DNA from: Diplonema japonicum
Lineage: Eukaryota; Protista; Euglenozoa: Diplonemea
DNA: 64,000 bases
Assembly (NCBI GenBank): GCA_964019335.1
Contig: OZ025747.1
Coordinates: forward strand, 248,001 to 312,000
Direction of reading: 5' to 3'
The notes under the pieces are model-generated. The model made no database searches, had not been told where the DNA came from, and saw nothing but the letters and a program-made list of their open reading frames with translations. Position numbers and translations under genes: made by a program. This document shows positions 1,161 to 37,543 of this stretch, in pieces; the first letter of the stretch is position 1, and every line of letters begins with the position of its first letter.

Positions 1161-1715
1161 CGATGGCTAGGGGGGTGGAGGTGCCCTTGATGTGAGATAT
1201 TTGTTTTATAAAGAGGAATCTTGCTCGGTGTGTTATTATTATTATTTTTTTTTTTTAATTCTTACCCATTACCGTGAAGCTTTTTTTTTTTTTAAAGAAG
1301 TGAGTGCCCCCCTTTTAAAATAAAATAAAAAAAATCACACTTTATCCTAGTTTTGAGGTTTTTTCTTCTTTTTTTTTTCTTTGCAAGGGGAGTTGTTGAG
1401 GACTTTAGAAAAAAAGAAAAAAAAAATAATTGGAAGAATCTCGTCTAGTAGATTTCGTACAGGTTTGTCTTCTCATGTTAACTGAAAACAGATTCTTTAT
1501 GCTCCTGGGTGCCTCCAGGAGCCTGTTTTTTTTAATTCCTTCCCTTGTGCCTGGCCTTGTAGCGGCACTCCTCCTATTTCTTTCGATTCTAAAAAAATAT
1601 AAGAAAATAATTTTTTTTCTTACGTGTTTTTCGGTTAAACTACTCCGGTTTCCACCCCCCCCCCCCCCCCCCCGCACGTTCAATTAACAGTTTCTTTTTT
1701 TTTTTTTCCCTTCTA

Positions 1716-2783
1716 CAGGGCCCCCGGTAAGGTGGGGATAGACCGGCGATGCCGGTCTAAGCAATTCTTTTTGAAAACGCCGCCGATCTACGTGGACCGG
1801 CGAATTTCTAGTACCTGCGGTAGGCCATAAGGAGGCAGGGGTTACCCCTTTTGTGAGGAATTTTTCTCTTTTTATTAATCACGGGGTGTGTGGTTTTAGT
1901 TGCATTGCCTGCACCCACTGAATAATAAACTGCAGAAGAGTTCCCTCTCATTCGGTTCTGTGAACGGGCTGCTTCATGGAGCAATCATGAAGCTCGCTGA
2001 ATCGGCAGCTCATGTCGAGAACCCCCCATGGACGAACTTTTGCGTGTCCCACGGAGTCCAACTCAGTTCCACGGCATCCAGTCTGTACCACGAAAAGGTA
2101 CACAAACTGTACTTCAGCGTTCTGATGAGCCGGAGTTGCAAGCTGCCGGTTTATTCGATCTTGACCATAAAATCTATGCAGGGGACAGGCCCGAAATCGA
2201 AACAGCTAAGCAGTTGGTCGAGCCGCTGCTTCACCACTTAGGCAATCAGTTCTTTATAGAACTTGGCAAAGAGACAAAGGATAAAGTGTGGAAGAGGGTG
2301 CAGCAGCTGAAGCCAGATAACTGGGTTAATGCCGTGCGAGAAGACATCAGTCTAGTGGTGACTGAGCTTGTCAAGACACCATCGGGAGACTCTAGAGGGC
2401 TCTTTCCTAAGCCCTGCATCGATAGAGTTCTTCTTGCTGCTATCCGCAATTCCCTGCTCTACAACCTGAGAAACTGAACTGTCTATTGGTGATAAGCACG
2501 GAGGGGGCAGATGTTCCGAGTGAAGACCTCATCAGTTGCGTCATAAGACGGTTTCATGATATGCCGACAAGCAGACGGCATGTGAACCTTACTGAGGCTG
2601 AGTTTCTGGAGGAGTAGCACAAACGTTCAGGGAGAAAAAAAAAAGTGTTCAAGCCTACGAGAGGCCCAATTAACGTTCACCCCTATTTTTTTTCTTTTTT
2701 TTTGAAAAAAAAAGGGTCTAAAAATCGGCCAAAAAGCACCGCAGGTCTATCGAAAAAAAACCCATTTTGAACCGGGGGCCCTG
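1716..2783 (+). mobile_element. Non-autonomous (internally deleted) hAT DNA transposon
   Basis: Perfect 13-bp TIRs CAGGGCCCCCGGT (1716-1728) / ACCGGGGGCCCTG (2771-2783); direct repeat CTTCTA at 1710-1715 and 2784-2789; subterminal GATAGACCNGCG motif at both ends; frameshifted transposase remnants inside. Confidence 0.85.
1900..2617 (+). pseudogene. hAT transposase C-terminal fragments, frameshifted
   Basis: LHPLNNKLQKSSLSFGSVNGLLHGAIMKL resembles the hAT 'LN..LQ' helix; IRNSL followed (other frame) by LQPEKLNCLLVISTEG...IRRF...SRR resembles the end of the hAT dimerisation domain. Confidence 0.65.
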
Positions 2784-3064
2784 CTTCTACAGCGGGTGGA
2801 AAAAATATACAACTATGAGCCCCAGAGGACGCTCACGAAGGGCTACCAAAAAGGGCAAAAAAAAAAAAATTCCTCCCACAAAATAGTTTTCCTCTTTTTC
2901 TCCCTCACCTTGTTAAAAAAAAAAAATGTAGCTTTCTGTTTTTTTTTTTTTCTTCTTCTTCTTTCTTGCCCTGTTATTTTTATTAGCTCCCCCTTTGCCA
3001 ATTTTCCTTTTTTTTTCCCCAAGAAATCTATAGAATAAAAAAAAAGGGGGGGAGAGAGAAAGAA

Positions 3065-3430
3065 ATGGATCTCGATAGCCTACTTAAATACCAGTTTATA
3101 TACTTCCTGTTCGGGCTTGGGTTCAACGTATTCAATGCAATCCACATGGCCCGTGGAGGGAAGCAGTACTCTCCCACCCCACCCAAGGTAGGTGGTGTCA
3201 CCATGTCCTTGTATGGGCTATCGTTGTTGCTTGGCTTATACAGGCACATGCCAGCTTACAAAGCATGCATGTGTTTGTTTATTGTGGTTCTTGGTGTGTT
3301 TGCTGTGGGCAACAACCTGAGAAACTTCAGCAAGATCAAGCAGCTCTACCTGTCCATTGTCACGTACGCAGCAGGCACAGGGATGAACGCGTGTGGCATG
3401 GTGCTCAACATAATGGCGCTGGGGTACTAA
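3065..3430 (+). CDS. Small 4-TM membrane protein of unknown function (121 aa)
   Basis: Clean ATG-to-TAA ORF with coding-like composition between homopolymer spacers; four hydrophobic segments. Confidence 0.7.
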   Translation: MDLDSLLKYQFIYFLFGLGFNVFNAIHMARGGKQYSPTPPKVGGVTMSLYGLSLLLGLYRHMPAYKACMCLFIVVLGVFAVGNNLRNFSKIKQLYLSIVTYAAGTGMNACGMVLNIMALGY

Positions 3431-3635
3431 AAAAAAAAAAAGAAAAAAAAGGGGGGGGGTAAACGTTTAATGTGGTAATTTTTTTTGTTTCCGAGTGGAA
3501 GAAAATGTTTTTTTTCTTGTTGTTATCCTTTTTTTCTGTTCGTTCCGTTGTCACGTCATGCCCACCACAGACGGGGGCTCGAGAAGGACCCCCCCCCCCC
3601 CCCCCCCCCCTACCAACAATGGAATGGATCGTCGG

Positions 3636-22944: not shown

Positions 22945-24520
22945 ATGACATGGGAACAACTAGCACAGGAATGGAGGGAAGGCAGTGGCGCAACGACAGC
23001 TGAGTTCAAGGCTTTCAACTACATTGGCGGAGAGAAGGTGTACACCGAAAAAGAGATTGAGAACGTGGCCCCAGCGACAGGCAGACGCATTGGGAGCATC
23101 CCCGACTCCGATGCACAGGATGTCGAAGCAGCGGTGAAAGCAGCAGAGGGGGCCCTGAAAGGCCCATGGGGGAGCTCCACTGTGGAGGAGAGGTCAAGCA
23201 TGCTGAATAAAATCGCAAACGCTCTGGAGAGGAAGATGGTTGCGCTAGCCGCCCTGGAGTCCGTAGACCAAGGGAAGACCATCGGGATGGCCACCAACGT
23301 CGACATCCCACGGGCGGTGGCGAACTTCCGTTTCTTCGCAGGCGCCATGCTGCACACAACAGACGGCTTCCACCGCATGGCGGAGGCCCTCAACTACACC
23401 ACCCACACCCGTATCGGTGTTGTGGGTCTTATCACCCCTTGGAACCTTCCCCTGTACCTCCTCTCCTGGAAGGTAGCCCCTGCCCTCGCCATGGGGAATG
23501 TCATCGTTGCCAAGCCCAGCGAGATGACCCCCTTCACAGCCACAGTCCTTGCGGAGGTATGTGCCGAGGCAGGGCTCCCCACCGGTGTCTTCAACCTCGT
23601 CCACGGGTACGGCCACCGCTGCGGGGCGGCCATCGTGTCGCATCCCAAGATCAAAGCGATCTCCTTCACCGGCGGCACCGTGACAGGCGAGAGGGTGGCC
23701 GCGACAGCCGCACCCATGTTCAAGAAGCTATCGCTGGAGCTTGGCGGGAAGAACCCTACCGTTGTCTTTGCGGACGCTGACTTCGACACCGCTGTGGCAG
23801 GGGCTGCTGCAGCGGGGTTCACAAACCAGGGGGAGATTTGTCTGTGCGGGTCGAGGCTGCTGGTGGAGAGGTCCATCCACGACAAGTTTGTGGCGGCACT
23901 GGTGGAGAAGGTGAAGGCACATGTAGTGGGTGACCCACGCTCCACCACCTCGACCATGGGGGCACTGGTCTCCAAGGCGCACAGGGAGAAGGTCGAGGGG
24001 TACATCAAGATGGCGGTGGACATGGGAGGGAAGGTGGTGTGCGGTGGTGTGCGTCCCTCACTTCCTGCGCCTTTCACAAACGGGGCCTTCCTGGAGCCGA
24101 CCGTCATCACAGGCCTGGCCCACGACGCGAGGCCCGCTGTGCAAGAGATCTTCGGCCCTGTTGTGACCGTGCACCCCTTTGACACCCCACAGGAAGCTAT
24201 CGCCATTGCTAACGAGACGCCTTACGGTCTTGCAGGCTCCGTGTGGACAACCAACCTCAACTTGGGCCACCAGGTGGCCGGTGCTCTTGACACTGGCATG
24301 GTGTGGGTGAACTGCTGGTTGTTGCGCGACCTGCGTGTGCCCTTTGGCGGTGTGAAAGCTTCTGGTGTAGGGAGAGAAGGCGGGAGGCTTTCCCTGGACT
24401 TCTTCAGTGAATCAAAGGTTTGTTTAGAATACAAAAATAAAAAAAAAGAGAGTAAGAAAAAAACAAAACAAAACAAAAAAAAAAACTCAGAATATTTGTG
24501 TCAAAGTATCGAAGCTGTAG
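22945..24520 (+). CDS. ALDH8A1: 2-aminomuconic semialdehyde dehydrogenase (ALDH8A1 family); exons 22945-24417, 24491-24520 (500 aa)
   Basis: ESVDQGKT, DIPRAVANFRFFA, PWNLPLYLLSWKVAPA, ELGGKN, NQGEICLCGSR, NCWLLRDLRVPFGG: ALDH8/HMSADH signatures including both substrate-binding Arg. Confidence 0.92.
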
Positions 24521-25126
24521 GGTTGTGCTGAAGAGGACAAGAAAAACAGGTGAAACAAAAAAAACAAAAAAAAAAAAAAAAAAAAAACGTGGTGTTTTAC
24601 TACCCTTTGTCCCCCCCCCCCATTAGTGGCTTTTAGTGGCTGAGGAGGCTGATATTATTTTATTTATTTTTGACTAAGAAAAACAGAGGTGTCTAATCCT
24701 GAAAGGAAAAAAAAAAGAACTAAAGGGAGAGGAAAGGGTATTTTTTTTTCTCATTTCTTTTTAAAATTTTGGGAAATCCGAGGCACGCCATTTCTATAGC
24801 AAAAAAAGAACGAGAAAAAAAAAAAGAGGGGTGAAAAAAAAAAAAAAGAGAAAAAAAAAAAAAAAACGTTTACCGTAATAGTACTTTTATTCGCCAGTAA
24901 ATTCGTCATTTTGGACTGGGGAAAAAAAATCCGCGAAATTGTCTTTGTGACCTCATTGCAGCCCTGCAACCACCCTTCGCTTCACCTATGGCGAATAAAA
25001 GTACCAAACACGGTTATTAAAAAAAAAAAAATTCTTCCTTGACCACTTTGCACCTTCCCCTCCCCGTCTCCCCTCCATGTCGCATCCCCTCACAAACAAC
25101 AAATAAAAACACAGGGAAAAATTTAA

Positions 25127-26581
<1,455 letters not shown>

Positions 26582-27056: not shown

Positions 27057-27444
27057 CGTATTTGTTGATCGATGCATAACATAATAGTCTCTTTCCCTGT
27101 TTCCCACCCTTCCTCTCAGTTTCCCCCGTTTTATTGTTGTTTTTTTTTTTATTTTTTATTATTCTTATATCCCCTCCCCTTCCTACTTTCTTTTTTTTTT
27201 TTGTTTATTTACCACCCTCCTTCAGCCATTTCTCCTTTAATAGCTGAGCAAAATCTATAAATATCCCACCCCGTTTTTTTTTTTTTTTTTTTTTTTTTAT
27301 TATTCTCCTCCGATCCTTTTTTTTTCCTTTTTTTTCTTCTTATAAAAAAATATGTCCTTTTTTTTTTTTTCCCCACATACATTACACCACCATCATCATC
27401 ATCATCATCAACAAAAAGGGGGGGGAAAAAAAAAGGGAAAAAAA

Positions 27445-28880
27445 ATGCCGCCGAAAAAGGGCCCCGTCAAAGAGAAGAAAAGAAACATACCAAAAGGAAA
27501 AGAAGGCGGCGGCGTGGAGCTGAGAGAAGCGGCGAAACAAGGCGACACCAATGCGGTCCGGTCCCTCGCGGTCATGCACGCCGTCGACGAGGTGGACGTA
27601 AGGGGCTTCACGGCATTAATGTGGGCAGCATGGTACGGCCACAGCAAGGTAATCGCAGCCTTGATAAACAGAGGGTCCGACCTCTCAATACAAGATGAAG
27701 ATGGGCAAACCGCATTATTCCATGCCAGCTGGAACGGACACAGCGAGGCAGTCAGCCTGCTTCTCAGAGCAGGCGCGGACCCTAACCAAGCCGACAGTGA
27801 AGGAGAAACCCCTCTATCCGCAGCAGGACGAAGCGGAACATACGATTGTGTCAGGCTTCTCATCACGCATAACGCCGACCCCAATCCACGTGACAAGGAA
27901 GGCCACAATGCCGTGTCCCGTGCTCTGAAGAAAGGCAACACGTCCATTGCACTCCTCATCGAGGACTACATGAGAATCTATTCGCAGCGAGGTTCAGGCG
28001 CAGCGTTGGACAGCCTTCTGGCAATGTCGCTTGCACGGCATCAAGAAATGCAGGCTCGGAACGCTGCCCTCACGCACCACCACAACCCCAACGCCCCGCA
28101 GGTGTTGGAACGGGGTTCTTACGATGGATTAACAGTCATCTCACCCGAACTCATTCGAATCGTATCCCGTGGGAAGCTCCCCAACGTTGGTGCTACCATG
28201 CGAGTCAACGGTGGTGCTACCGAATGGTACATCCTGTCAACAGTGAAGGGAGGTGGTGTGAAGGCTCGTTCGAATACCCCAGGTGCCGCGAACACATGGG
28301 GCGATGCAGGCGATGAGGTCGGGGCTGGGTTATGGGCTTCCGTTGTACCATCTCAACCTGGAATGGTTCTTCACCCCCAAGCAGGAATGGTGGGATCTGG
28401 CAGTATGGGTGTCGCATCACCCCCTCCGAATGTTCAGTCCGCGTACCAACAATATCAATATTACCAGCAAAACCAACGAGTCATGCCCGCTCAAGCCACA
28501 CCACCTCCTGTTCAACATCAACAGACTGCTTCCAAGCAACACATTGCATTTGGAAATGCTGGTGCTAGGGAAGCTAGTATGCCCCTTGCTGGTGTACCTT
28601 CCCCGGGATCGCCGAGGAAAACGACCAGACGGTCTGGGTACAAGAGAGATAACCCAGCTTATCGTGCACCTAATGGGTGTACTGTGTGCTCTAAGGTAAG
28701 ACCGCCTCTTAGTTACTGTGAGGAGTGCAATGAAGAAATGTGCAGTGGGTGTTGGGTTCGCGAGCACCAAAATAGAAAGAGGAGGCTTCATATCCCTCAC
28801 CCGGTATGGCTTTTGGGGAACCTTATTTATTTTAACAGGTGGAACTTGAGGTGATAGGAAGCGATGAGGAGGATGAGTGA
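27445..28880 (+). CDS. Ankyrin-repeat protein with C-terminal B-box-type zinc finger; exons 27445-28803, 28839-28880 (466 aa)
   Basis: GFTALMWAA, GQTALFHAS, GETPLSAAG repeats; CTVC..YCEEC..MCSGCWVREH..H; ATG follows an A-run. Confidence 0.85.
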
Positions 28881-32717: not shown

Positions 32718-35120
32718 ATGGAGCAGCCCAAAGGCATGCGAGAGATTGATGAAGACGAAGACGAATACCTAGCAAGAGTGCAGGGCATCGCTCGAGAGCT
32801 GGATTCCGAGGCTGAGATCTATGTCGGCAAAGGTCTTGGAGGGTACGAGAAATTTTTTCGAAACAACGACGAGGAAGAGATAGAATGGGAGGAGAGGGTC
32901 TTGGTGGAACTGGAGAGGAGAGAGCAGCAAGTGATGGAGATCGTGGAGCAGTGGGAAAGGCAAGAAAACGCCACAAACCAAGCCTACGAGAGAACGCTAG
33001 CGGCGGTCGGGACCTCGGCCAACACAGTAATCCATTCCATAGATATAAATGATGGGTACCTCCGTGAGAGAAAACGACTGCTGCATCTTTACGAAGAGAC
33101 CTTACAGACAAAGCTGTGCAAAGTTCCTTTCGAGTACGAAGACGACACCTCCCTTCCTACAAAGGAGCGCGAGTTCCGCCGCCTGCAGCGGCTTACCTTT
33201 CGTAAAGCCGTTATCAATTCCTGCAATAAAACAGCCTCCATGCTCATCGATCGTTATCTCACCTCGGACACTCTGTCCCTCCGTTGTCCTTCTCTAGGAC
33301 GCCGCCTTGATGAAGACCCCATCGACTACATCACACGTGTCAACCTCCTGGTACACGAGGCGATCAACACCACCATCCAGGGGTACAATGCGTACAGGAC
33401 GGATCTTGTTCAGGACGGTGATCCATCGGTGTCCCTCCCGCTTGTGTCGGTACCGTTGGCCACGAACCTTGTAGGGTCCATCCGCAGCCCGCAACGCCCC
33501 GAAAGAGTCCCAATGAGCGACATCATCGTAAACCGTCATAATGACCTTGTGCAACGGGGCAAGGTGCAGGAGCTGAAAGTCCCTGGTGGACGTGACTGGG
33601 TTGATGGGTACCTTGCTTCCCGTGACACGCCTGCCACTGACGTCAACCGGCTGCACCACTGGGTTGGTGTCGCAAAGAAGCTTATCAACGGCAACACACC
33701 AACTGAGGATCCGAAATCTGTGCTGAACACCACTGCGGGTTCCACATCCAACCCCATCCCTCCCTCGCTCCTCACGGCCATCGCGCAGGCTTGGCAGGAC
33801 AGCAATTCCCCGTTTATAAAACCAGGTTCCTCCGCTTCATCCCTCGTTGAGGAGTACAGCAGGACGCATCCCTTCCCTACCCTCACCATCCCCAAGGGGT
33901 ATTCAGAGCCCGATTGGATCAGAGCCTCCGTCAACAGGGCAGCAAACATGAAGGCGGCGTACTTGGATGGGTTCCGCAAGTGGTTGGACACGAGGCTGTG
34001 TTTCACACCAGCACATGACTCACCTGAGAAAACAGCTTGCGTGCCTTGGGAGGATCAGGACATCCTTTCCGTGCCGAAGAAGCCCATCGTGACACCGTTG
34101 GTGTCGCCACGGAGGAGTGCTGTTAGAAAGATGTCGCCAGAACGAAGGCTGTCGCCTGTTAAGAGACTGTCTCCCAGGATGAGACTGTCACCGGTGAGAA
34201 GGCCGGTGAGGGATCCTGATGCTGTGTGGGAGGTACCGTTGGAACCCTTACTGGACATGCCTGTGAAGTCTCCCCCGCCTGCCTACAAGATCTCAAGGCA
34301 ACCGATCTCCGCTCTTGACAAGATACTGCATGCCTCGGCACTGATTGTGCCACACCTACACTTGATGGTGGATCTGCAGCTGACACCGCAGCCGTTGCCC
34401 GTCACGTCTCCCGCCCTCCCTCGCCTGCTGTGCGTCGCATGCAAACACGATGCTGTCTACATGTGTATAGAGTGCAGCGGGAACTCGTTCTGCCCTTCGT
34501 GCTGGGATGTCAGACACCAGCATGTCAAGCATCGTAAGCTTATTACACCTTACATTTGTTTCATGTGCAAGTCAGCAGCCGTGATGGAGTGCCGCGAGTG
34601 TCGTATAAAGTGCTGCAAGTCATGCTGGGACCACAGCCACCAATGCATGGAACACCACGAGGGCATATCCCTGCAGCAGAACAATTATCTCGGGAAGGAA
34701 GAGCACCAGCACGTGTCGCCGCAGAGGAATGTGGTGGACGAAGGCGATGTGACAAAGATGTGGCTATCGCGGAACCCTGACACAGTCACGAGAGTCCGGA
34801 AGAAGTGGACGATGCAAAGGCAGCAGGACACAGCCGCCATCGTTCCCGAGATCCCGAAGTCGCGTGTGATCCCCCACCCAGAGAATGTGCAAAAGCTGTT
34901 AACCTTCTACAAGAACAACGCCCCACACAAGATGCACCTCGTGATGGACGTGCTGCGCAACCACCACGGCAAGGAAGAAGAACTCTTCGCCTCCCTCGAA
35001 TCGGAGTATGCTTCTGCCTCAAGCGAGCCACCCACTCTCTCGTGGTCCTGCCCGTCGTGCGACTTCCAGAACGCCGACACCACGACGACATGCATCAACT
35101 GCAACACACCTAAACCTTAG
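32718..35120 (+). CDS. Uncharacterised 800-aa protein with two B-box-like fingers, SPxR repeats and a C-terminal RanBP2-type zinc finger
   Basis: CVAC..CIEC..FCPSCW..H and CFMC..CREC..CCKSCW..H; WSCPSCDFQN..TCINC; SPRR..SPERRLSPVKRLSPRMRLSPVRR. Confidence 0.8.
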   Translation: MEQPKGMREIDEDEDEYLARVQGIARELDSEAEIYVGKGLGGYEKFFRNNDEEEIEWEERVLVELERREQQVMEIVEQWERQENATNQAYERTLAAVGTSANTVIHSIDINDGYLRERKRLLHLYEETLQTKLCKVPFEYEDDTSLPTKEREFRRLQRLTFRKAVINSCNKTASMLIDRYLTSDTLSLRCPSLGRRLDEDPIDYITRVNLLVHEAINTTIQGYNAYRTDLVQDGDPSVSLPLVSVPLATNLVGSIRSPQRPERVPMSDIIVNRHNDLVQRGKVQELKVPGGRDWVDGYLASRDTPATDVNRLHHWVGVAKKLINGNTPTEDPKSVLNTTAGSTSNPIPPSLLTAIAQAWQDSNSPFIKPGSSASSLVEEYSRTHPFPTLTIPKGYSEPDWIRASVNRAANMKAAYLDGFRKWLDTRLCFTPAHDSPEKTACVPWEDQDILSVPKKPIVTPLVSPRRSAVRKMSPERRLSPVKRLSPRMRLSPVRRPVRDPDAVWEVPLEPLLDMPVKSPPPAYKISRQPISALDKILHASALIVPHLHLMVDLQLTPQPLPVTSPALPRLLCVACKHDAVYMCIECSGNSFCPSCWDVRHQHVKHRKLITPYICFMCKSAAVMECRECRIKCCKSCWDHSHQCMEHHEGISLQQNNYLGKEEHQHVSPQRNVVDEGDVTKMWLSRNPDTVTRVRKKWTMQRQQDTAAIVPEIPKSRVIPHPENVQKLLTFYKNNAPHKMHLVMDVLRNHHGKEEELFASLESEYASASSEPPTLSWSCPSCDFQNADTTTTCINCNTPKP

Positions 35121-35215
35121 ATTGTAATAGATATCTTACCGTTGTACCATTAATATTTCTTTTTTTGCCATGTTTGACACTCATTTGCTCAAAGGAAAAG
35201 GTATTTTAAAAAAAA

Positions 35216-36767
35216 ATGGCTGAAAAACGAAAGGGCGAGGCGCTTCCTGTGACAGGGTACCTGGTGCACGGGACGACGAAGCAGTGCTGGGAGAAGATTA
35301 AGAACTTGGGGCTGAACAAGATGTCGAGGCGCCACGTGCATTTTGTGGAGGCGAAGGACGTCAACGACTGCATCGACGGTGTCGTGCCGGTGAGGGAGGA
35401 GGGGAAATGGAAGGATGCGAAGAAGGAAGTGCTCATCTTCGTAAACAGGGAAAGAGCAGAAAGAGACGGACTGGAGTTCTTCGAGCATGTAAGCGGGGGC
35501 AACACAGTGCTGACAAAAGGAATCAAGGACACCGGGATGGTCCCCCTTGCGTACATCGACAAGGCAGTTGATGTGGAAACCGGCGACGTTCTCTGCGAAC
35601 CTGTCGGCGCATGCCTCCTCCCCGCCCCGCCTGTCAAACGTGGAAGGACAGGGCTTCCATGGACAAAGAGATACTTCAAAGTTGACTCGCACACTCACAT
35701 CCTTCCCGAGAGCCTTGATTTATGCAAGAAGTTCTTGGAAAAAGGGTACATCACCCTGGAGCCAACCGAGCAAGGGAGAAACATGTTGAAAGACGGGAAA
35801 CTGTTCAGAGCGATTAAGGCAAACTGCTATTCTGCAGAAGCGGTGCTTGACGACATGGTGAGCAATGACATCGATGTGCAGGTGCTGTCTACAGTCCCGG
35901 TGATGTTCTGCTACTGGACAAAGACGAAGAACGACGCTGTGGAGCTGGCAAGGTATCTGAACGATGACATCGCTGCAGTGGTGAAGAAGAATCCGACCAA
36001 GTTCATCGCGTTGGGAACGCTGCCCTTGCAGTTCCCGGACGAGGCGGTCAAGGAGCTGAAGAGGTGCGTCAACACCCTCGGCATCAAAGGATTCCAAATC
36101 GGGTCCCACGTCGAACAGTGGGAACTCTCCGACCCCGCACTGTTCCCCGTCTTCGAGGCCGCTCAAGAGCTCAACGTCTCCATAATGGTGCACCCCTGGG
36201 ACATGATGGGCGCCTCGGAACACGGCAACAAATACTGGCTTCCATGGCTGGTGGGCATGCCTGCTGAGACAACACGTGCCATGTGCCACATGTTTATGTC
36301 AGGTCTGCTTGACAAGCTCCCTAAGCTCCGTGTCATGTTCGCCCATGGTGGGGGCTCCTTCGCGTACACCGCAGGGAGAATACAGCATGGTTACAAGTAT
36401 GTGTATTATTCTGATTTTTTTTTTATTTTTTATATAACATATTCACAGCTGCCGACCGGACCTGTGTGCCATCGATGCCAAGGAAGGGCCCATGACCTAC
36501 CTTAAGACACCTGAGAGGTCTGCGCGCTTCTGGGTGGACACCCTTACACATGACGCGGAGGCCATGCGGTTCCTCGTGGAAAAGATGGGTGAAGACAGGA
36601 TTGTAATGGGGTCCGACTACCCCTTCCCTCTTGGGGAGTGGGTGCCCGGGAGGATGATCGAGGAGCTCGACGGTGCGGGGTGGACGGAGGAGAGGAGGGA
36701 AAAGATTCTCTCGAAGAATTTTTTCGAGTTCATGAACATGGACATTAAGGACTTCCTGCGTGAGTGA
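35216..36767 (+). CDS. ACMSD: Fusion of the Tpt1/KptA NAD+-binding lobe with aminocarboxymuconate-semialdehyde decarboxylase; exons 35216-36396, 36449-36767 (499 aa)
   Basis: N-term YLVHGT..WEKI..GLNKMSRRHVHF..LIFVN..DGLEFF..VLTKG..GMVP; C-term DSHTHILP, DGKLFR, LSTVPVMF, VHPWDM, KYWLPWLVGMPAETT, FAHGGG, GRIQHG, RPDLCA, GSDYPFPLGE. Confidence 0.92.
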
Positions 36768-36879
36768 ATGGAAAAAAAAAAAAAAGAACAAAAAAACGTA
36801 ATTGTTGTGTTGGAAGAAATCAAGGAAGAGAAATAAGAGGTTTTTAGGAAAAAGGGGATAGCAAAAAAAAAAAAAAAAA

Positions 36880-37543
36880 GAAAAACAACGTACACGGTAA
36901 CCAAATAACTTTTTTCCACTCAAGTCTGTAAGCAGAATTTCCACCACTGTTTACGGTAACCCACAACTTTTTTTCCACTCAAATGGTTTTTTGTAAAAAT
37001 TTTCCACTCTCCACGGTAACCTATTTTTATTTCCACTAAACCATGTAAGTAAGAACTTTTTTTCCACCGTCCACGGAAACCCACAACTTTTTTTTCCAAC
37101 GTCCACGGTGGAGGTGTGTGTGCACTTGGGGAAAACGTGTAGGCACAACCAGGGCTCGAAAAAAGACACCAAGAATTTCTCCTGGAAGTTGGCAAGGGCG
37201 ATTTCCAAAGACGATTTAAAGCCAAAGCCGAGGTATTGGGCGTCTGATGTACTTCTCCACCCCTCGCCCCCTGCCTGTGAAGGATATGCCAAGGATGACC
37301 TCAAGCCCCCTGTTGTCACGAAGTCACAGATAGGCAGGCCAGCAAAGAGGAAGCGAAGTGAGAGAGAAGGGGAAAATAAATGCAGCAACTTGTAAAAACC
37401 TTTATTACTCAACCGCTGCGCCAGGTGGTTACAGTAAAAAGTGGAAAAAAAGTTGCAGGTTACCGTGGATGGTGGAAAAAAAGTTGGAGGTTTAAGACGA
37501 CGGTGGAAAAAAGTTATTTGGTTACCATGTACGTTGTTTTTCC

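Follow-up and report, generated by a model that had tools for sequence, protein, structure and literature searches.

A lone Tpt1/KptA NAD+ lobe fused to ACMSD in Diplonema japonicum and its relatives: a candidate nucleotide-responsive regulator at the ACMS branch point

The diplonemid Diplonema japonicum expresses a polypeptide in which Tpt1/KptA, an RNA 2'-phosphotransferase, is represented by its C-terminal NAD+ lobe alone, deprived of the RNA lobe and placed ahead of a complete ACMSD. The gene occupies positions 35216 to 36767 (+) of the window, i.e., the 64,000-nucleotide stretch of contig OZ025747.1 that was analysed, and its two exons and single intron specify a product of 499 residues. 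Of this architecture and of its expression we are practically certain. Regarding function, an earlier note on this DNA had proposed the half-Tpt1 as a candidate NAD-sensing switch; judged from its sequence, we assign a probability of roughly 40% to the reading in which it is an adenine-dinucleotide-binding regulator of the attached ACMSD. The activity of ACMSD sets the share of tryptophan carbon that becomes NAD+. In animals, this enzyme is controlled mainly via its expression, and drugs intended to increase NAD+ are directed at it.

The half-Tpt1 domain comprises residues 14–127 (35255..35596, +). It had been recognised from the motifs HGT..I..GL.KMSRRHVHF and LIFVN..DGLEFF..VLTKG..GMVP followed by a Pro-rich linker, all of which are present, and its assignment to the NAD+ lobe alone agrees with the results of Pfam, phmmer and Foldseek. 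Pfam PTS_2-RNA (PF01885) matches residues 14–102 (E 1.5e-12, 48 bits versus a cut-off of 26) with only positions 101–177 of the 177 in the profile; likewise, a C-lobe-only match (profile ~77–102 to 165–177) was obtained for all ten relatives scanned with Pfam. Mouse and human TRPT1 were the best PDB matches of the domain in phmmer. An AF2 model of the domain (mea748fd3b3d7, pLDDT 78.4) was compared with known structures using Foldseek, where ranks 1–22 were all Tpt1/KptA (E 1.7e-5 to 1e-2, TMq 0.43–0.54), followed at lower ranks by DUF952 and ART toxins. The domain is therefore predicted to adopt the ART-like C-lobe fold.

The two-lobed architecture typical of Tpt1 is not found here, nor in the 10 relatives scanned: the N-terminal lobe for the RNA (2'-PO4) is missing, and with it three of the four residues of the Arg-His-Arg-Arg catalytic tetrad, so that only the C-lobe Arg is left, as R38 (Rsl Arg119, Pho Arg115). 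Because of this loss, the fusion is not expected to be a canonical RNA 2'-phosphotransferase, i.e., NAD+-dependent removal of RNA 2'-phosphates is predicted to be absent, as the earlier note had anticipated. A split Tpt1 with a separately encoded RNA lobe was considered and rejected, given that whole-genome searches with the PF01885 HMM and with the canonical Tpt1 P0128 gave only the fusion gene and one FHA-Tpt1-like gene, and no lone Tpt1 N lobe. The FHA protein ends in a two-lobed Tpt1-like domain that is catalytically degenerate; the separate full-length Tpt1 that was expected exists in this form only, and D. japonicum seems to be devoid of a canonical Tpt1.

The same architecture, for which related protists were to be searched, recurs in no fewer than 21 proteins, the most divergent at ~45% identity, and this cannot be attributed to chance. 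Its carriers are diplonemids, the prokinetoplastid Papus and environmental relatives. A word-indexed search with residues 1–145 recovered only the six diplonemid fusions and was too insensitive, so that exhaustive phmmer was required for this part of the protein. Searches that started from the window were run one exon at a time; whole-protein searches used as query P0001, a complete TRINITY ORF from the D. japonicum transcriptome that is identical to the 499-residue conceptual product. In the resulting tree the 21 fusions and two unfused sisters form one clade (SH-aLRT 100), for which one gain suffices, and the ACMSD of the euglenid Ploeotia (P0038) is unfused. The fusion is a single ancient gain under purifying selection, conserved since before the split between diplonemids and kinetoplastids; in the transcripts of related strains, all 13 of 13 differences are synonymous, four of them within the half-Tpt1 domain. 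The literature that could be searched (open-access papers) yielded no description of a Tpt1-ACMSD fusion, and to that extent the claim that none had been described stands; nevertheless, the orthologue from D. papillatum was already in GenBank (KAJ9464019.1), labelled simply as ACMSD.

In Tpt1, NAD+ is bound exclusively by the C lobe, with a Kd of ~31 uM, compared with 96 uM for ADPR and 123 uM for ADP. If free NAD+ were high, binding with a Kd in this range, i.e., tens of uM, would leave the site always occupied, a consideration that counts against sensing. The residues that contact NAD+ are His99, Thr101, Ile109, Gly113, Met117, Arg119 and His123 in the Runella enzyme (PMC8464070), and His95, Gly96, Thr97, Gly109, Arg115 and His119 in that of Pyrococcus (PMC10622864). 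An ungapped alignment of residues 14–44 of the fusion with residues 95–125 of 7kw8 maps these contacts to H18, G19, T20, I28, G32, M36, R38 and H42, in such a way that the HGT motif and the adenosine/adenine contacts (H18-G19-T20, I28, G32, M36 and H42) are found at the canonical spacing. Except for G19, which is replaced by Ala or Ser in 6 of the 21 fusions, each of these residues is retained in 17–19 of the 21; one or two of the pocket residues are also absent from each of P0008, P0010 and P0021. Of the 114 columns of the domain, 22 are conserved to 90% or more, and these include seven of the eight mapped contacts (hypergeometric P = 3e-5).

Other parts of the canonical site have changed. 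The Asn of the S-x-N-x-V motif, a nicotinamide contact in the Tpt1 NMR structure, is present in 41 of the 41 canonical Tpt1 proteins compared, and its position is occupied by N, H, D, K, P, Q, E, T or R in the fusions. The Ser and Arg of the SGMR motif are found in 38 of the same 41 proteins; the D. japonicum fusion has D54 and no aligned Arg. In Pho this Arg is Arg133, which contacts the alpha-phosphate; the fusions either lack it or have it shifted, and R60, a shifted candidate substitute, occurs in diplonemids only. Since neither the invariant Asn nor the SGMR Arg is kept, the affinity or the identity of the ligand may differ. From the residues of the pocket, we consider it somewhat probable that the half-Tpt1 retains nucleotide binding, and the sensing of NAD+ or ADP-ribose appears plausible.

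The domain is followed by a linker, residues 128–154 (CEPVGACLLPAPPVKRGRTGLPWTKRYFK; 35597..35677, +), that is predicted to be flexible, with a pLDDT <50 at residues 132–148; the model shows no fixed interface between the N-terminal domain and the barrel. The rest of the protein, residues 155–499 (35678..36764, +, split by the intron), aligns with residues 2–335 of the 336 of human ACMSD (2wm1, E 1.5e-104) and with the enzyme of P. fluorescens (E 1e-53), and the match to Pfam Amidohydro_2 begins at residue 156. The metal and catalytic residues H159, H161, H326, H377 and D450, and the substrate arginines R198 and R388 (Arg47 and Arg235* in human numbering), align to those of human ACMSD, and these functional residues are invariant across 20 fusion proteins. 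A different decarboxylase of the amidohydrolase_2 family was rejected as the identity of this barrel, because the matches to 5-carboxyvanillate decarboxylase (E 4e-24) and to IDCase (E 3e-22) are far weaker than that to human ACMSD. By its sequence, this part is a bona fide ACMSD, complete as the earlier note had described it.

Instead of a regulator, the half-Tpt1 could be an exapted structural module that senses no ligand and serves ACMSD dimerisation or stability, or docking to a partner such as AMSDH, in which case the putative NAD+ residues would persist mainly through the needs of the fold or through inheritance. In agreement with this, Flectonema (P0123, P0007) no longer has T20, M36, R38 and H42 but preserves the linker and the C-terminal half of the domain. 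Among diplonemids the linker is more conserved (78–93% identity) than the N-terminal domain (52–79%), and a half-Tpt1 is also found on an unrelated oxygenase in Ploeotia; the loss of the canonical Asn and of the SGMR Arg points in the same direction. However, H18, T20, R38 and H42 belong to the polar pocket and not to the core, and they have been kept across two clades in which the identity of the N-terminal domain is only ~30–42%, as would be predicted for ligand binding. On balance, a purely structural role is somewhat unlikely, and a nucleotide-binding regulator is the reading that we prefer.

It was also considered that the half-Tpt1 could still be catalytic, either as a slow NAD+ glycohydrolase or as an ADP-ribosyltransferase whose substrate would be the attached ACMSD, a partner or some small molecule with a phosphate or carboxyl group, so that NAD+ would be consumed or modified rather than sensed. 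Retention of the ART-type H-H-h core (H18, H42) and of the catalytic Arg of the C lobe (R38) speaks for this, and archaeal Tpt1 enzymes show an intrinsic NAD+ glycohydrolase activity and also use NADP(H) (PMC10622864). On the other hand, three of the four essential catalytic residues, i.e., the Arg-His and the Arg of the RNA lobe, disappeared with this lobe, the otherwise invariant Asn is variable, and the Arg for the alpha-phosphate has either shifted or gone. It also counts against catalysis that, to our knowledge, the Tpt1 family has no ART-type catalytic Glu. Catalysis by the half-Tpt1 is thus improbable, and the preferred reading continues to be that of a binding domain that regulates ACMSD.

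Evidence that both domains belong to one mRNA came from the sequencing runs, which were compared as assembled contigs. The X8 RNA contig starts with 21 letters that are absent from the local DNA (CTACAGTTTCTGTACTTTATT), joined at 35194; from there it proceeds to 36396 and then from 36449 to 36756, covering both domains. In the genome, 214 further copies of the 22-mer formed by CTACAGTTTCTGTACTTTATT and the terminal G were found, versus 0 for the control, which is what a spliced leader (SL) would be expected to show. The acceptor consists of a polypyrimidine tract and an AG (35155..35194, +, with the AG at 35193-35194), where the local DNA reads ...TTTCTTTTTTTGCC...CAAAG, with the junction before the following G. 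Next to it lies a 5' UTR of 21 nt (35195..35215, +) that contains an in-frame TAA at 35207-35209 and no ATG ahead of 35216, and the N-terminus is therefore fixed. Exon 1 (35216..36396, +) includes codons 1–393 and two bases of codon 394, and exon 2 (36449..36767, +) the last base of codon 394, codons 395–499 and the TGA stop at 36765-36767. Between them, the 52-nt GT..AG intron (36397..36448, +) is skipped exactly in the X1, X2 and X8 contigs and is retained in the X7 DNA contig, so that the sole interruption of the frame lies within the ACMSD part, where the earlier note had placed it. The stop of the upstream ORF is at 35120, only 95 nt from the ATG, and an SL-joined RNA contig that begins 21 nt before this ATG indicates that there is no upstream exon, a point on which the same note had also been right.

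Hence, the suspicion that the fusion arises from merged neighbouring genes, a missing upstream exon or a downstream transcript start can be dismissed for the major transcript, in view of the single spliced, SL-joined contig, the in-frame stop, the short intergenic distance and the recurrence of the architecture in transcriptomes obtained independently from D. japonicum, D. ambulator, Rhynchopus and Papus; nothing was found in its favour, with the sole caveat that a rare internal trans-splicing event yielding an ACMSD-only isoform would be compatible with the contigs.

The genome of D. japonicum encodes TDO, kynureninase (440 bits), HAAO (198 bits) and QPRT (178 bits). In addition, an AMSDH/ALDH8A1-like 2-aminomuconate-6-semialdehyde dehydrogenase is encoded in the window (22945..24531, +; Pfam Aldedh E 2e-160), on the same strand as the fusion gene and ~10.7 kb upstream of it; its best PDB matches are all AMSDH (4i1w, E 5e-146), ahead of the next ALDH class (E 1e-108). 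From this set of enzymes it follows that the ACMS branch point exists in this organism, flanked by HAAO, by QPRT towards NAD+ and by AMSDH towards oxidation, and that ACMSD lies between NAD+ synthesis and catabolism, where it had been placed from the sequence. AMSDH is NAD+-dependent and uses up the product of ACMSD.

In the mechanism that we propose, the half-Tpt1 would have no remaining RNA chemistry and would still bind an adenine dinucleotide (NAD+, ADP-ribose or ADP); binding is proposed because conservation within the domain is highest at precisely those residues that grip adenosine/ADP in solved Tpt1-NAD+ complexes. Occupancy of the site would be relayed via the linker or through an altered dimer state, and the activity of ACMSD would rise when NAD+ is plentiful, steering ACMS off quinolinate and NAD+ synthesis and matching the flux to the NAD+-dependent AMSDH, the next enzyme. 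It is known that the activity of ACMSD depends on its dimer state. Euglenozoa have polycistronic transcription and little gene-specific transcriptional control, and control of ACMSD at the protein level would therefore suit them. Regulatory coupling of the half-Tpt1 to ACMSD is, taken by itself, a possibility that we hold tentatively. A wider reading, which we find rather doubtful, is that C-lobe-only Tpt1 modules form an unrecognised class of ART-derived, non-catalytic sensors of NAD+ or ADP-ribose that Euglenozoa put on metabolic enzymes, with diplonemids and kinetoplastids using ACMSD as the partner and Ploeotia a 2OG-Fe(II) oxygenase. Such modules would provide metabolite-level control where gene-specific transcriptional regulation is lacking, and on ACMSD they would close a direct feedback loop from NAD+ at the branch point of its de novo synthesis.

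If the regulatory reading is true, the fusion would be the first candidate for an allosteric control exerted directly at the level of the product on the ACMS branch point, and half of an enzyme with the ADP-ribosyltransferase fold would be re-usable as a ligand-binding module. Even if sensing were disproved, two points would stand: the Tpt1 C lobe occurs repeatedly as a module of its own in Euglenozoa, and D. japonicum seems to have no canonical Tpt1. Diplonemids rank among the foremost marine heterotrophic protists in both abundance and diversity, and genetic manipulation is feasible in D. papillatum, which makes the idea of sensing directly testable.

Compared with known ACMSD enzymes (human 2wm1/4ih3, Pseudomonas fluorescens 2hbv), the fusion aligns from end to end and conserves all the metal, catalytic and substrate residues, and it would operate between HAAO and AMSDH, both encoded in the genome; it differs from them by an N-terminal extension of 154 residues, i.e., the half-Tpt1 and the linker, to which the kinetoplastid-like sister clade adds a B-box zinc finger inserted inside the barrel (~aa 430–510 of the proteins of that clade). 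It resembles Tpt1/KptA/TRPT1 (human 7yw3, Runella 7kw8, Pyrococcus Tpt1-NAD+ 8tfz) in its N-terminal domain, whose sequence and predicted fold are those of their ART-like NAD+ lobe at the C-terminus, including the HGT, the Ile and Met that sandwich the adenine, the Gly that reads its N6, the catalytic Arg and the second His, all equally spaced. In contrast to these proteins, it has neither the N-terminal RNA lobe (Arg-His...Arg) nor the GHS hinge, the invariant Asn or the SGMR Arg; the diplonemid fusions insert 7–10 residues after G55, and the module does not stand alone but is joined to an enzyme of metabolism.

Tpt1 domains have been found before in multidomain proteins, such as the Tpt1-Yae1 fusion of S. 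pombe (PMC12810181) and the KptA-Nudix fusion of Bodo saltans virus (PMC9503650), and our searches also showed Tpt1-RNase_T, Tpt1-RRM, Tpt1-FHA and tandem Tpt1 proteins. These retain both lobes (profile ~1–177) and have partners that handle RNA or ADP-ribose, and none of them is a C lobe alone on an enzyme of the tryptophan/NAD pathway. The closest parallel comes from another euglenozoan, Ploeotia vitrea, whose protein P0136 (EukProt EP01006) carries two tandem half-Tpt1 modules and a DIOX_N/2OG-Fe(II) oxygenase. As in the fusion, a C-lobe-only Tpt1 module (profile 99–177) is N-terminal on a metal-dependent enzyme, and the features held in common include F-Y-x-H and extra residues that follow the G-x-x segment; however, there are two copies of the module, the first with HVT in place of HGT, and the partner is nearest to solved 2OG oxygenases of the ethylene/succinate-forming type. 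The presence of the module on this oxygenase indicates that it is neither specific to ACMSD nor tied to NAD metabolism.

A more distant analogy may be drawn with two systems that adjust NAD homeostasis by binding a nucleotide related to NAD through a domain that is either accessory or derived from an enzyme: NrtR, a sensor of ADP-ribose that descends from Nudix enzymes, has no catalytic activity and regulates bacterial NAD genes, and SARM1, whose ARM domain is an allosteric sensor of NMN and NAD+. Their folds are unrelated to that of the half-Tpt1, and their targets are transcription in the case of NrtR and an NADase in that of SARM1, whereas the target proposed here would be the branch-point decarboxylase to which the half-Tpt1 is attached.

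The gene at window 35216-36767 (+ strand) starts with an ORF that opens at 35216 and enters an intron; exon 1 (35216-36396, + strand), a 52-nt GT..AG intron (36397-36448, + strand) and exon 2 (36449-36767, + strand) were read from the DNA and checked by script, and the intron was also recovered from an RNA contig. The spliced product of 499 aa was 100% equal, by script comparison, to the EukProt entry P0001, a complete Diplonema japonicum ORF from a TRINITY assembly, which assigns the window to this diplonemid. P0001 was used as a stand-in for the spliced protein in whole-protein searches, the joining of the exons being covered by this identity check. Transcript evidence was taken from assembled contigs of four public runs (X1, X2, X7 and X8) aligned on 34900-36900. 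Run X7 is DNA, and its contig retains the intron. Run X8 behaves as RNA: a single contig of 1,561 nt proceeds from 35194 to 36396, omits exactly 36397-36448, and resumes up to 36756, spanning both domains. Its 5' end consists of 21 letters foreign to the local DNA (CTACAGTTTCTGTACTTTATT), with the junction at 35194. Together with the next G these letters form a 22-mer, which we take to resemble the 3' end of the kinetoplastid/diplonemid spliced leader (SL), and which has 214 further genomic copies versus 0 for a reversed control. Therefore, a further upstream exon is impossible. The earlier note had expected one transcript across the junction and no room for a missing exon, and both expectations hold, the latter also from the 95-nt gap after the stop (35120) of the preceding ORF, which encodes a B-box/RanBP zinc-finger protein, and from an in-frame TAA (35207-35209) ahead of the ATG. 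The mature mRNA is formed by the SL, a 21-nt UTR, the ATG at 35216 and both domains; this is read from contigs, so rare internal trans-splicing is still compatible with it. Runs X1 and X2, from related strains with 98-99% identity, show the same splice as X8, and all 13 of their CDS differences are synonymous, four of them within the half-Tpt1 domain. The genomic copies of the 22-mer are scattered over most contigs, often within a few kb of the contig ends. Many of them may be something other than ordinary SL RNA genes, because the copy at locus L007 (contig 1 of the assembly, 315923-315944) has a poly(A) run before it and GGGTGGG, rather than GT, after it.

The N-terminal domain (aa 14-127) had been read as the C-terminal, NAD+-binding half of Tpt1/KptA without its RNA lobe. 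In agreement with this, Pfam PTS_2-RNA (PF01885) matched aa 14-102 with 48 bits (cut-off 26), exclusively through profile positions 101-177 of 177, and the best PDB matches with phmmer were mouse and human TRPT1, aligned on their C lobes. When 1.84 billion representatives were searched exhaustively with phmmer, 450 matches reached E<=1e-3, nearly all of them ordinary two-lobed Tpt1 proteins aligned via the C lobe. Modelled with AF2 (pLDDT 78.4), aa 1-145 retrieved only Tpt1/KptA structures at Foldseek ranks 1-22, followed by DUF952 and ART toxins. The nearest relatives of the half-Tpt1 outside the fusions are the database proteins P0124, P0125, P0126, P0130 and P0164, each of them containing two to four full Tpt1 domains in tandem; one of these proteins comes from an MMETSP transcriptome.

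The remainder of the protein is a complete ACMSD, as the earlier note had it. Pfam Amidohydro_2 extends from aa 156 to the C-terminus, and aa 155-496 align to residues 2-335 of the 336 of human ACMSD (E 1.5e-104); other amidohydrolase_2 decarboxylases reached E 1e-24 or worse. The metal ligands H159, H161, H326 and D450, assigned by equivalence to the human enzyme, the catalytic H377, and the equivalents of the substrate-binding R198 and R388 are invariant in the fusion family. The linker (aa 128-154) was modelled as flexible by AF2, yet it is the best conserved segment among diplonemids (78-93% identity, versus 52-79% for the N-domain and 73-80% for ACMSD).

Judging from gene content, the host has a working ACMS branch point. 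Because TDO (three exons), kynureninase, HAAO and QPRT are encoded in the genome, and a 2-aminomuconate-6-semialdehyde dehydrogenase (AMSDH/ALDH8A1-type; 22945-24531, + strand; best PDB matches all AMSDH, E 5e-146) in the window, ACMS would have two routes, one leading to quinolinate and NAD+, the other to oxidation by way of ACMSD and the NAD+-dependent AMSDH. The AMSDH gene lies on the same strand, about 10.7 kb upstream of the fusion, and is followed by a dihydrolipoamide-dehydrogenase-like flavoprotein (25145-26581, + strand); consecutive pathway enzymes are co-located in this polycistronic genome. Two neighbouring genes (27352-28854 and 32718-35120, both + strand) also encode ANCHR-like B-box domains, combined with ankyrin repeats in one case and with a C-terminal RanBP2-type zinc finger in the other; 95 nt lie between the end of the second gene and the fusion. 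In the 3' intergenic region, a 663-nt element (36880-37542) looks MITE-like: 40-nt terminal inverted repeats (36880-36919 and 37503-37542, 98% complementary) form its two ends, and it contains sub-repeats of about 30 nt (CCACNGTNCACGGNAACCCACAACTTTTTTT) and has long poly(A)/poly(T) runs on its flanks.

The same architecture was found in D. ambulator, D. papillatum, Rhynchopus euleeides, Flectonema neradi, two further large-contig genomes, the free-living prokinetoplastid Papus ankaliazontas and about a dozen environmental proteins. When the ACMSD domains of 119 proteins were placed in a maximum-likelihood tree, the 21 fusions (21/21) and two unfused sequences formed one clade (SH-aLRT 100), and a single gain explains the fusion. 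Since the euglenid Ploeotia vitrea contributes one of the unfused sisters with its ACMSD, the fusion probably dates from the common ancestor of diplonemids and kinetoplastids, later than the euglenid split, on a tree rooted only at its midpoint. The earlier note knew of no such fusion, and no published description of it was found in the open-access literature searched. Both domains are well known, and the architecture is visible in public protein records annotated only as ACMSD, e.g., the D. papillatum orthologue KAJ9464019.1 (GenBank). Many Papus-like members of the clade carry a B-box zinc finger inside the ACMSD barrel; in the proteins P0008, P0010, P0012, P0014 and P0016 (about aa 426-511) this B-box (PF00643/PF22586) lies between the 'PM.Y' and 'ARFWVDSL' segments, and some Papus/kinetoplastid-like members have a low-complexity insert in its place.

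A separate full-length TPT1 had also been expected. PF01885 has only one further match in the 62.5-Mb assembly (contig 21, 255232-255765, - strand). It belongs to a gene (1396-3468, - strand, of locus L001) whose 691-aa product combines an RD/RS-rich N-terminus with an FHA domain, a coiled coil and, at the C-terminus, a two-lobed Tpt1-like domain. The two lobes are present; nevertheless, the catalytic residues are degenerate, with Arg-His replaced by Leu-Lys, the next catalytic Arg by Lys, the second His by Tyr, and the GHS hinge lost. A canonical Tpt1 query against the whole genome detected nothing beyond these two genes, so that the expected TPT1 is present in form alone. RtcB is present, as well as a weak Trl1-CPD-like match.

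In this fusion the Tpt1 NAD+ lobe is catalytically incomplete and the ACMSD is complete; the fusion itself is real, expressed, ancient and selectively maintained. According to published work, the C lobe of Tpt1 is the exclusive NAD+ binding site, with a Kd of about 31 uM, and the ADP moiety drives the binding. The NAD+ contacts are His99, Thr101, Ile109, Gly113, Met117, Arg119 and His123 in the Runella enzyme (PMC8464070), and His95, Gly96, Thr97, Gly109, Arg115 and His119 in that of Pyrococcus, where Arg133/His134 contact the alpha-phosphate (PMC10622864). Ungapped alignment of residues 14-44 with 95-125 of 7kw8 maps the contacts to H18, G19, T20, I28, G32, M36, R38 and H42, which are retained in 17-19 of 21 aligned fusion proteins; of the 114 columns of the domain, 22 reach 90% conservation or more, and these include seven of the eight positions (P = 3e-5). 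Most likely, the half-Tpt1 would still bind NAD+, ADP-ribose or ADP and, when ligand-bound, would modulate ACMSD, so that de novo NAD+ synthesis would come under feedback and flux would be matched to the NAD+-dependent AMSDH. A purely structural or oligomerisation role is the less likely but still sizeable alternative; the loss in the fusions of a conserved Asn and of the 'SGMR' Arg counts against sensing, as does the pocket of Flectonema, which is degenerate while the linker is kept, and the conserved contacts stand on the other side. On its adenosine/ADP side the pocket looks intact. Residual NAD+-consuming catalysis is a good deal more doubtful: the nicotinamide and catalytic side has drifted, the Asn of 'S-x-N-x-V' (41/41 in canonical Tpt1) being variable across fusions and the 'SGMR' Ser and Arg substituted, and the RNA lobe, absent here, holds three of the four catalytic residues essential to Tpt1. 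An artefact is hardly credible given the SL-joined transcript and the orthologues.

C-lobe-only Tpt1 modules are not restricted to ACMSD, and their occurrence on an unrelated enzyme also counts against sensing by the half-Tpt1. In Ploeotia vitrea, which also has an unfused ACMSD, the protein P0136 (EukProt EP01006) has two tandem modules of this kind before a DIOX_N/2OG-Fe(II) oxygenase whose nearest relative among solved structures is of the ethylene/succinate-forming type (9ovh, E 1e-57). The proteins P0133, P0162 and P0255 each consist of one half-domain, alone or with an unknown tail, and P0201 is a tandem pair and nothing else. P0136 and P0201 share with the diplonemid half-Tpt1 common derived features, e.g., F-Y-x-H ahead of the last strands.
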